DNA from: Salisapilia sapeloensis CBS 127946
Lineage: Eukaryota; Protista; Oomycota
Assembly: GCA_023334545.1 (NCBI GenBank)
Contig: JAADVB010000097.1
Location: 1 to 61,443 of the forward strand
Length of the DNA stretch: 61,443 nucleotides
Direction: 5' to 3'
Each line of letters begins with the position of its first letter. Positions within the stretch are counted from its first letter, which is position 1. The notes under the pieces were generated by a model that did not search any database, was not told the origin of the DNA, and saw only the letters and a program-made list of their open reading frames with translations. The position numbers and the translations under genes were made by a program. This document shows positions 1 through 61,419 of this stretch, piece by piece.

Positions 1-208
1 AGGTGTCTGATTGCCAAATAATTGCCGATAACTTCTAAAACAGTCGGAAGTTTTATTTCGAGCGCTCATGAATCAGTCAGGCTCCAAATAGGATAAACCA
101 CCTCCGGAGGTGGTTTGTTTTATTTTGGAAATAAGATCAGTGGAGCTGAAAGATAAGAATCTTATTTAAGAAAAATAAGGCACTTTTTGCCAGGTTTGCC
201 GCCCCCTA
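1..208. mobile_element. Non-autonomous TIR element (MITE-like) family A, copy 1, left end cut off by the window edge
   Basis: 1-~190 aligns with 60387-~60575. The right end CAGGTTTGCCGCCCCCTA (191-208) is an imperfect reverse complement of the left end of copy 2 (TAGGGCATGTCAAACCTG, 14/18). Contains the perfect 22-bp palindrome AAACCACCTCCGGAGGTGGTTT at 95-116. No coding capacity. Confidence 0.75.
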
Positions 209-59722: not shown

Positions 59723-60347
59723 AATCAGCAATTGGGTCCTACGACTCGGAAGTGATGCAAGCGTGCGAGCAGCCGTGACGGGATCCGCACTTGGTGACCA
59801 CAGTCTTTGTTTACAAAATGCCACAGTGTCATTGAAGTACAAAAGTAAATTCCCATGGACTGCTTGGATCTCAATTCCATTTACTTTAATCTCATTAATA
59901 CTGCAAAGACGCGGGTAAACTGTTTAATGTAAGCACCATTTCATTCTTTGCAAAGTAATACACCCCTTTCTCTTTTGTATTGATTGATGTTTATCCACGT
60001 TCAAAGGAACGATTTCCTTGGCGAAGTTTCCACATGAACTTTGCACATAAAATGCCTCGTAGCTAAAAAGATTCCCTTCTGTATTACAGGCGGCTTAATT
60101 ATCCTACTAAGTAGGTAATTATGTCTAACCTGCTGCTCTTTATTCGCCAAAATACCTGAGAGTTGTATTTGAACAAGGCGTGAACGGCTTTGCTTGGCGT
60201 GAGGTCTACCTGCGATATAGATCGGACATCTTAATTTTGGAAATTCGGAATTTAACTAGCATGGACCAGCTTGACCCGGACTAAAAACCAAGCGAATTAC
60301 ACTAGAAAGATGGCTACTTTTAGCGATAATGTACTGCACATATACAT

Positions 60348-60596
60348 TAGGGCATGTCAAACCTGTCAAAACCGCAAAATATAATGAGGTATCTGATTGC
60401 CAAATAATCGGACATAACTCCTAAAAAAAGTCGGACGGTGTATTTCGAGCGCTCATGAATCAGTCAGGCTCCAAATAGGATAAACCACCTCCGGAGGTGG
60501 TTTGCTTTATTTTGGAAATAAGATCAGTAGAACCGAAAGATGAGAATCTCATTTAAGAAAAATGAGGCACTTATTGGGCGGGTTTGACATCCCGTA
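60348..60596. mobile_element. Non-autonomous TIR element family A, copy 2 (complete, 249 bp)
   Basis: TIRs TAGGGCATGTCAAACC (60348-60363) and GGTTTGACATCCCGTA (60581-60596) match at 14/16. Internal homology to 1-208. Palindrome at 60482-60503. Confidence 0.8.
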
Positions 60597-60597
60597 T

Positions 60598-60788
60598 TAG
60601 GGGGTTCAAAGTACTGGAATCGGACAAAAATTATTCGTCATCTGTGTTCGAGATTATCACCACCAACCTGCATAAATATCGGACTTTTAAATTATCAGAC
60701 TCCCCAAATATCAAAATCTGACGATTAAAATATCCTCATCAGAAAGCAAGAAATATAAGACAAAATTTTGCTACTTTGAACCCTCCTA
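60598..60788. mobile_element. Non-autonomous TIR element family B (191 bp)
   Basis: Left end TAGGGGGTTCAAAGTA; the right end reads TAGGAGGGTTCAAAGTA as reverse complement (identical apart from a 1-nt insertion). Internal ATCGGAC/ATCAGAC motifs. Confidence 0.75.
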
Positions 60789-61419
60789 TTTTGCCATTTA
60801 GCTTTGGCTTCATCTCCCTCAGAAGTTACAAAGACGGTCGCAGTTGTAGCACAGGAGAGCACAAAGCCACGGCTACGATGTAAATTGTCTGCTCGTTGTC
60901 TGTGTCAACCATTTAGCAGATACTGTTAATACGATAAGACTTGATTTTACCACTGACAGCTACAAAGATGCCCGCGAGTGAAGAACAGAAGAGCATCGAA
61001 TGACCGGTACGGTGCGATGCTGTTTGGTCGACGTCTGGAATCATCATCTAGCATACGTTATAGCTTGAATTTCCTGCAGTTCGCCGACGCCATTTCCATG
61101 CTCTTTGGAGGGTTTAAAATCACCTCCGATGGTCTAAGCTAGTTGCCAAGTAGGATAACCAAATCGAGCAATAATATCTACGCACTAGCAAGAGTCGGTA
61201 TCGTTTGCTCAAGTGGTGTCAAAGCAAATACGAATAGAGGTTGTGATTGTACCTTCACAAGCTTACGAATTTTAGCTGCGTTGGTCATTGTCCTGTCCGA
61301 GATATGTTACAATACCTTCAACGAGAAAAATCACACACGACAGAGGGCGGCCCACTCGGCACGCCAGAAATGTTTCCCGCAGTATCGACTCCATCTATGG
61401 AAATGGCAGCGAATCTCCA

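Follow-up and report, generated by a model that had tools for sequence, protein, structure and literature searches.

The window analysed here is a stretch of 61,443 nucleotides that makes up the whole of contig C1333 of the Salisapilia sapeloensis CBS 127946 assembly, which comprises 22.4 Mb in 1365 contigs. It carries two copies of a short repeat, one cut by the start of the contig and one near its end, the latter placed beside a further, related element. The features on which the following account draws are these:

1-206, forward strand: copy 1, a family-1 MITE of the young subfamily A; its 5' end is cut by the contig start, with about 37 nt missing, and its flanking TA lies at 207-208
54-141, forward strand: the 88-nt "core" of copy 1, essentially equal to the subfamily-A consensus
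95-116, no strand: the perfect 22-bp palindrome AAACCACCTCCGGAGGTGGTTT of copy 1, whose inner 12 bp, ACCTCCGGAGGT, are common to families 2 and 3
60350-60594, forward strand: copy 2, a full-length family-1 MITE with TA at 60348-60349 and 60595-60596; an old subfamily-B copy with a subfamily-A centre
60441-60531, forward strand: the maximum extent of the proposed conversion or recombination tract of copy 2, bounded by a private G at 60440 and a private A at 60532
60482-60503, no strand: the 22-bp palindrome of copy 2
60540-60552, forward strand: ATGAG-AAT-CTCAT of copy 2, in which G60542 is the subfamily-B state and C60550 a private transition
60600-60786, forward strand: an adjacent family-4 MITE with the ends GGGGGTTCAAAG...CTTTGAACCCTCC, TA at 60598-60599 and 60787-60788, and no ACCTC palindrome

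The initial annotation drew attention to a core that is almost invariant between the two copies inside flanks that are not. Both halves of this observation hold. The core of copy 1 (54-141) and that of copy 2 (60441-60528) are identical at 87 of 88 positions, the sole mismatch being T118 against C60505. Meanwhile, the left flanks differ at 11 of 54 aligned columns and the right flanks at about 7 of their first 45, for an overall divergence of about 15%. The dyads named in that annotation were also located as described: the pair TATTTCGAGC/GCTCCAAATA, the perfect palindrome, TTATTT-TGG-AAATAA, and ATAAG-AAT-CTTAT, which reads ATGAG-AAT-CTCAT in copy 2.

The distribution of this repeat in the genome provided insights into its nature. 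Used as a query, copy 2 returned 36 matches, which represent at least 25 copies on different contigs and with unrelated flanks. The element is non-coding and, at 235-246 bp (about 246 bp in full), too short for a transposase. Its terminal inverted repeats start with GGG(C/G)GTGTCAAACCTGnCAAAA, with the inverted complement at the other end, and the ends GGGCGTGTCAAACCTGTCAAAA and TTTTGCCAGGTTTGACACCCCC are conserved across the family-1 alignment. The terminal-repeat pattern matched the genome 46 times, against a single match for the control. TA stands before 20 of the 22 left ends and after nearly every right end, and no longer duplication is consistent among the copies. Duplications of the 3-bp TWA (Tourist/PIF) type, of the TTAA (piggyBac) type and of 8 bp were considered and rejected, as the flanks do not fit them. 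Judged by its sequence anatomy, family 1 is a MITE family with a target duplication of the Tc1/mariner/pogo type. The copies fall into two subfamilies of different age: A copies differ from their own consensus by 2.7% on average and are young, while B copies differ from theirs by 11.6% and are old. Subfamily 1A is also more numerous than the older 1B.

These features are shared with the Stowaway-like MITEs derived from Tc1/mariner/pogo elements: a length of about 246 bp, a lack of coding capacity, terminal inverted repeats of about 22 bp, TA on both sides, tens of dispersed copies, a division into subfamilies, AT-rich targets, and insertion beside other MITEs. The difference lies in the autonomous element, as none with matching ends was found. 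In the fragmentary assembly there were no pairs of terminal repeats lying kilobases apart, and the Transposase_1 profile had no match in the genome. DDE_3 was represented by one broken fragment, on contig C13, without family-1 ends. Five pogo-type DDE_1 domains were detected in open frames of 580-654 aa, at the following positions:

C540:6159-6662, C564:17219-17725, C664:10771-11277, C335:73162-73668 and C113:5518-6051: DDE_1 domains

These frames are not linked to family-1 ends. The exact terminal-repeat pattern was absent from the vicinity of all five, and its sole match on those contigs was a family-1 MITE copy about 18 kb away, on C540. The five DDE_1 frames are possible sources of the transposase used by these MITEs. 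A locus with two family-4 left ends, inverted and 1.2 kb apart (L154, C912:4424-5758), was also considered as a transposase-bearing element and rejected, since only short frames, among them LRR-like fragments, lie between its ends. The locus represents two MITEs with host sequence between them, or else a larger composite element.

The terminal sequence GGGGGTGTCAAAC and the internal palindrome were matched to no described family, and a literature search on oomycete MITEs yielded no match to family 1. In metagenomes, the 17-nt terminal-repeat pattern gave 115 single matches, none extending past the seed, which is by estimate about the number expected by chance in so large a collection; relatives in other organisms were not recovered in this way. 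Family 1 is an ordinary MITE family, apparently an undescribed one. Of the earlier suggestion that the locus harbours an undescribed cis element carried by a MITE, the MITE stands, and the constrained dyad survives for the central palindrome only, and there only in comparisons between families.

Some further observations concern the insertion and the ends of these elements. The right end of a family-1 element abuts the left end of another related MITE in two independent cases, once with family 4 (60595-60600) and once with family 2 (L023/L201, C1026:1695-1725). In both, one base separates the two TA duplications, as CCCG-TA-T-TA-GGGGG in the window and CCCC-TA-A-TA-GGGGG on C1026, which suggests a preference for TA sites directly beside existing element ends. 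The most variable patch of family 1 occupies columns 59-66 of the 20-copy alignment A1 (window 22-29 and 60408-60415). B copies have TCGGACAT there and most A copies TTGTCCAT, copy 1 and its nearest kin having TTGCCGAT; these clusters of three to four neighbouring changes resemble small local inversions (GGACA versus TGTCC). The motif (A/T)ATCGGAC recurs near the ends of families 1B, 2 and 4, and may be a subterminal binding motif.

The subfamilies offered a way to read the two copies of the window site by site. On its left side, copy 2 displays subfamily-B states at 60373, 60409, 60411, 60412 and 60420. In its centre, it displays A states seven times in a row, at all of the diagnostic sites between 60447 and 60515 (including 60447, 60468, 60478, 60482, 60485 and 60515). 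On its right side it returns to B states at 60542, 60564 and 60578, with one weakly diagnostic A state at 60570. Compared with the A consensus, copy 2 differs at 2 of 88 core positions and at 24 of 158 flank positions (p=0.001), while its differences from the B consensus are evenly spread. States that match neither consensus follow the same division, with 1 among the 88 core positions and 16 among the 158 of the flanks (Fisher 0.007; Poisson 0.0013, with 8.9 expected in the core). A maximum chi-square analysis delimited a low-difference segment at alignment columns 92-179/182, which was equalled in 2 of 300 permutations when copy 2 was compared with copy 1 and, at a borderline level, in 16 of 300 when it was compared with copy L002.

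Copy 1 is an ordinary young member of subfamily A. Copy 2 is an old subfamily-B insertion, in which, we propose, at most 91 nt of the centre (60441-60531) were replaced by subfamily-A sequence. The most likely route of replacement would be short-tract ectopic gene conversion, or template switching during repair. Such a replacement of the middle of an old B copy would explain why the cores match at 87 of 88 positions while the arms differ by about 15%. Gene conversion had been listed among several options in the initial annotation, and it is the one that best fits the 88-nt identity, given the switch of diagnostic states and a tract younger than the arms around it. From these sequence patterns we infer, rather than observe, that the core of copy 2 was overwritten from a young A copy, and we consider this probable. 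The mosaic reading is built on one copy and a short sequence, with one of its two breakpoint tests borderline.

Ectopic gene conversion and mosaic copies are known among dispersed repeats such as Alu and Ty. As in those mosaics, a stretch of no more than 91 nt from one subfamily resides within a copy of another and looks much younger than the arms. Unlike in Alu and Ty, here we infer the process, with a putative donor and mechanism, from one copy, together with a probable second case. The second case involves copies L015 (C1157:1-191) and L007 (C376:367-609), which share the core variants GACTCC, ATATGATAAGCC and CCGGGGG and carry left patches from different subfamilies, of A type in L015. By these shared variants, the two copies probably reveal a second mosaic in the family. 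In the family at large, incompatibility affects 29% of informative site pairs, but a distance-dependent incompatibility test for recombination revealed no significant effect of distance (p=0.39), and pervasive recombination is not claimed.

The closest competitor to this mosaic reading dispenses with conversion altogether. Copy 2 could descend from an intermediate master with an A-type core and B-type arms, its clean core then being a chance clustering of differences. The order in which diagnostic changes arose in the master lineage could produce mosaic-like states, homoplasy is common in the family, as the incompatible site pairs indicate, and the borderline breakpoint test (16/300) is in keeping with such a history. 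A copy of that origin, however, should have gathered private changes in its core as it did in its arms, about nine of them, and one was found (Poisson 0.0013; Fisher 0.007). We therefore regard an intermediate master as improbable.

An assembly artefact, in which the core of copy 2 was "corrected" towards the far commoner A-type repeat or threaded through it, also had to be weighed, as the assembly does break at this repeat. Positions 1-141 of the window are letter for letter the start of contig C1222, and these 141 nt also form the ends of contigs C606 and C1355, whose overlap with the window start is exactly 105 nt. In all, four contigs end or start inside subfamily-A copies with identical ends of 141 nt. 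These ends are a junction, in a de Bruijn graph with k=141, between two near-identical subfamily-A copies, and the left-hand join of the contig is ambiguous. The junction accounts for the two contigs that stop at the palindrome centre and for the apparent end of the core at position 141. A break at the palindrome centre caused by a hairpin was rejected on the geometry of these identical contig ends. Copy 2 is in a different situation. It is internal to the contig, some 850 nt short of the end, and its longest run identical to A copies is about 64 nt, within a near-match of 88 nt. A collapse there is unlikely because no run of 141 nt is common to copy 2 and other copies; as the identical run falls short of the apparent k, each final k-mer that spans the core also holds variants specific to copy 2. 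The arms of copy 2, moreover, retain isolated private variants. We give an artefact very little credence.

Hardly any weight attaches to the explanation favoured at the outset, namely purifying selection that keeps the 88-nt core intact in every inserted copy, either as structured RNA or ssDNA or as a set of protein-binding dyads, because the core is not specially conserved in the rest of the family and does not covary within it. The identity of 87 of 88 positions against arms diverged by about 15% does invite this explanation, as does the folding of the element, and the details are given in what follows.

Across the 20-24 copies that could be compared, the core is no better kept than the rest of the element. 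Mean pairwise identity among 16 full-length copies is 0.885 in the left arm, 0.866 in the core and 0.827 in the right arm, and falls to 0.731 in a short subfamily-diagnostic patch. With copy 2 left out, the other 23 copies carry private changes at equal rates in the core (40/1824, 2.2%) and in the flanks (60/3172, 1.9%; Fisher p=0.46). The core ranks 35th of 159 among the 88-nt windows of family 1, and the palindrome 138th of 225 among its 22-nt windows. Between copy 2 and the old B-type copies there are 10-18 differences among the 88 core positions, which is not what selection on every inserted copy would leave.

The folding of the element told a similar story. The 22-bp palindrome folds beyond chance (z -4.5, with none of 200 shuffles as good), while 54-94, 117-141 and 142-190 fold like their shuffles (z -0.87, -0.97 and +0.25; 37, 37 and 116 of 200 shuffles as good). 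The "multi-dyad core" is thus one real palindrome accompanied by AT-rich dyads of a chance type, three of the four dyad regions being at chance level. The whole element folds far better than shuffled sequence, with a z of about -6, because of its terminal repeats and its one palindrome, as in any MITE. Four helices proposed from the dyads were evaluated in alignment A1: 87.4% of cells pair, against 87.2% after shuffling, both sides change in 2 cells, against 2.4 expected, and the covariation score is 0.083, against 0.084. The covariation term of RNAalifold for family 1 amounts to -0.21 kcal/mol. One series from A-U through G-U to G-C at pair 193-201 is the kind of change that a selected helix would show. 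A search of Rfam with the whole window returned nothing at the gathering score, and at E-values up to 1 the stretch 60300-60850 gave chance-level matches only.

The double substitution that had been read as compensatory has a simpler history in the subfamilies. ATAAG...CTTAT is the subfamily-A state, other B-type copies carry ATGAG...CTTAT with a G-T pair, and ATGAG...CTCAT occurs in copy 2 only. The change hence comprises an inherited subfamily-B state (ATGAG) and one private T>C of copy 2. A private transition opposite an inherited difference is unremarkable, because copy 2 has about 16 private changes in 158 flank positions. The third ATAAG that becomes ATGAG, counted earlier as part of the same pattern, is merely the B state. 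Collectively, family 1 displays uniform conservation, no covariation, and an 88-nt identity that resembles conversion, which are the outcomes that the initial annotation had itself set against its claim of selection on a folded core. Inserted family-1 copies decay neutrally, and the core decays with them.

The central palindrome has a wider distribution than family 1. Its inner part, ACCTC[CT][GA]GAGGT, gave 37 strand matches in the genome, against 5 for a backwards control. Of 24 distinct sites, 22 lie in short TA-flanked repeats with family-1-like ends, in which TA is joined to GGGG(G)..TCAAAG. Two further families were delimited in this way. Family 2 comprises about 20 copies of about 246 bp that are 75-82% identical, and family 3 about 14 copies of about 310 bp that are 70-83% identical. 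A division of the former into families "2a" and "2b" was rejected, as these were one family read in opposite orientations. When the family consensuses are compared, only the terminal repeats and the palindrome match between families 1, 2 and 3, the remaining interiors being unalignable. The outer arms of the palindrome differ by family and are yet complementary, reading AAACC-apex-GGTTT in 1A, AAGCC-apex-GGCTT in family 3 and TCAGCT-apex-AGCTGA in family 2. The apex is ascertained, because the sites were searched for by it; neither the related terminal repeats nor the complementarity of the outer arms entered into that choice.

A centre-anchored alignment of 48 copies over 36 columns (A2) was used to quantify this complementarity. 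Of its cells, 84.2% pair, against 74.4% after shuffling; both sides change in 87 cells, against 41 expected; and the covariation score is 0.370, against 0.205. None of 500 shuffles reached any of these values, and controls with slid partners scored 0.17 at most. The independent covariation events are few, because the signal consists of about four family-level double changes, at 12-25 (CG/UA), 10-27 (GC/AU), 8-29 (AU/CG) and 6-31 (AU/UA), and of two changes in single copies, L214 (CG>GC) and L190 (CG>UA). Covariation between families in a DNA palindrome cannot separate an RNA from a DNA hairpin or a site for a dimer. The copy L214 (C1133:59731-59961, family 2) displays a paired stem transversion from C-G to G-C at A2 columns 14 and 23, and its nearest kin, L208, has the 3'-arm change only. 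L214 is a candidate for a single-step templated correction.

The palindrome fares differently from family to family. In the older family 2 it is the best conserved of 205 windows, while in families 1 and 3 it decays like its surroundings. Conservation in the one and decay in the others are expected if constraint acts on propagating lineages and not on inserted copies. Within family 1, the 5' arm is imperfect in 1B (GAAGC) compared with 1A (AAACC). Two substitutions separate them; each falls in the 5' arm and re-establishes its complementarity to a 3' arm that has not changed. Selection for symmetry could account for this step, and so could one templated (quasi-palindrome) correction. Family 4, to which the element at 60600-60786 belongs, matches family 2 in its left part up to ATATCAG and then continues with unrelated sequence that lacks the palindrome, and it is present in several copies.

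Based on these findings, we tentatively suggest that the central palindrome may be a cis module that is retained in propagating lineages and helps their mobilisation, a reading of the sequences that we hold at slightly less than an even chance. The apex ACCTCYRGAGGT is conserved, with the outer stem changing by paired substitutions among the three families, and the palindrome may work by forming a hairpin or cruciform, or by offering a symmetric site to a dimeric transposase or a host factor. Several findings speak against a cis module. Family 4, whose terminal repeats are related, has spread without a palindrome, in families 1 and 3 the palindrome decays as the sequence around it does, the covariation comes down to about four family-level and two copy-level events, and the genome searches revealed no autonomous partner.

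The main competitor of the cis module is a palindrome conserved between families without any function, and we consider it possible, if the less likely of the two. The palindrome could be a relic that is kept symmetric by mutation, through template switching or quasi-palindrome correction, or it could be a recombination junction at which new families are founded. The passage from 1B to 1A, with two changes in one arm that restore pairing, bears the signature of a single templated event. Families 4 and 2 are homologous exactly as far as the 5' arm of the palindrome, as would befit a junction, and family 4 multiplies in the absence of the palindrome. Template switching, however, leaves unexplained why the same 12-bp apex is found in three families, and a relic would not be expected to be the best-conserved window of family 2.

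Known systems offer partial parallels on both sides of this question. The 3' hairpins of Helitrons and the end hairpins of IS200/IS605 elements have stems that vary between families with pairing kept, and are needed in cis. The palindrome of these MITEs is similar in having a stem of family-specific sequence in which pairing is kept. Unlike those elements, the MITEs combine classical terminal inverted repeats with a TA duplication, an anatomy of the cut-and-paste type; their palindrome is internal and has a conserved apex, and no HUH/Y1 enzyme is implicated. Meanwhile, quasi-palindrome correction and template-switch mutation represent a mutational route and not a function. The two nearby one-arm changes that perfected the palindrome from B to A, and the paired transversions in L214, are like the products of such correction, whereas the conservation of the apex between families is not explained by it. 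A stronger form of the cis module, in which the ACCTCYRGAGGT hairpin would be a functional module of a superfamily of TA-flanked MITEs in this genome, with the apex read by its sequence and the lower stem by its shape, is more speculative, and we consider it possible but less likely than not. If true, it would imply a step that depends on a hairpin or cruciform, or a symmetric internal site for a transposase or host factor, in classical cut-and-paste elements. It would also mean that a restored perfect palindrome, in the passage from subfamily B to subfamily A, preceded the latest burst of copies.

What had looked like a selected, structured core resolves into familiar transposon biology, in which subfamilies differ in age and a short tract, probably of conversion, gives one old copy a young-looking middle. 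Unequal divergence between two copies therefore says little until the whole family has been aligned. Beyond this, the analysis leaves a modest lead, in that three MITE families share only their ends and one palindrome whose arms change in pairs. If the palindrome is needed for mobilisation, these families would depend on an internal cis element, a need seldom attributed to MITEs that duplicate TA.
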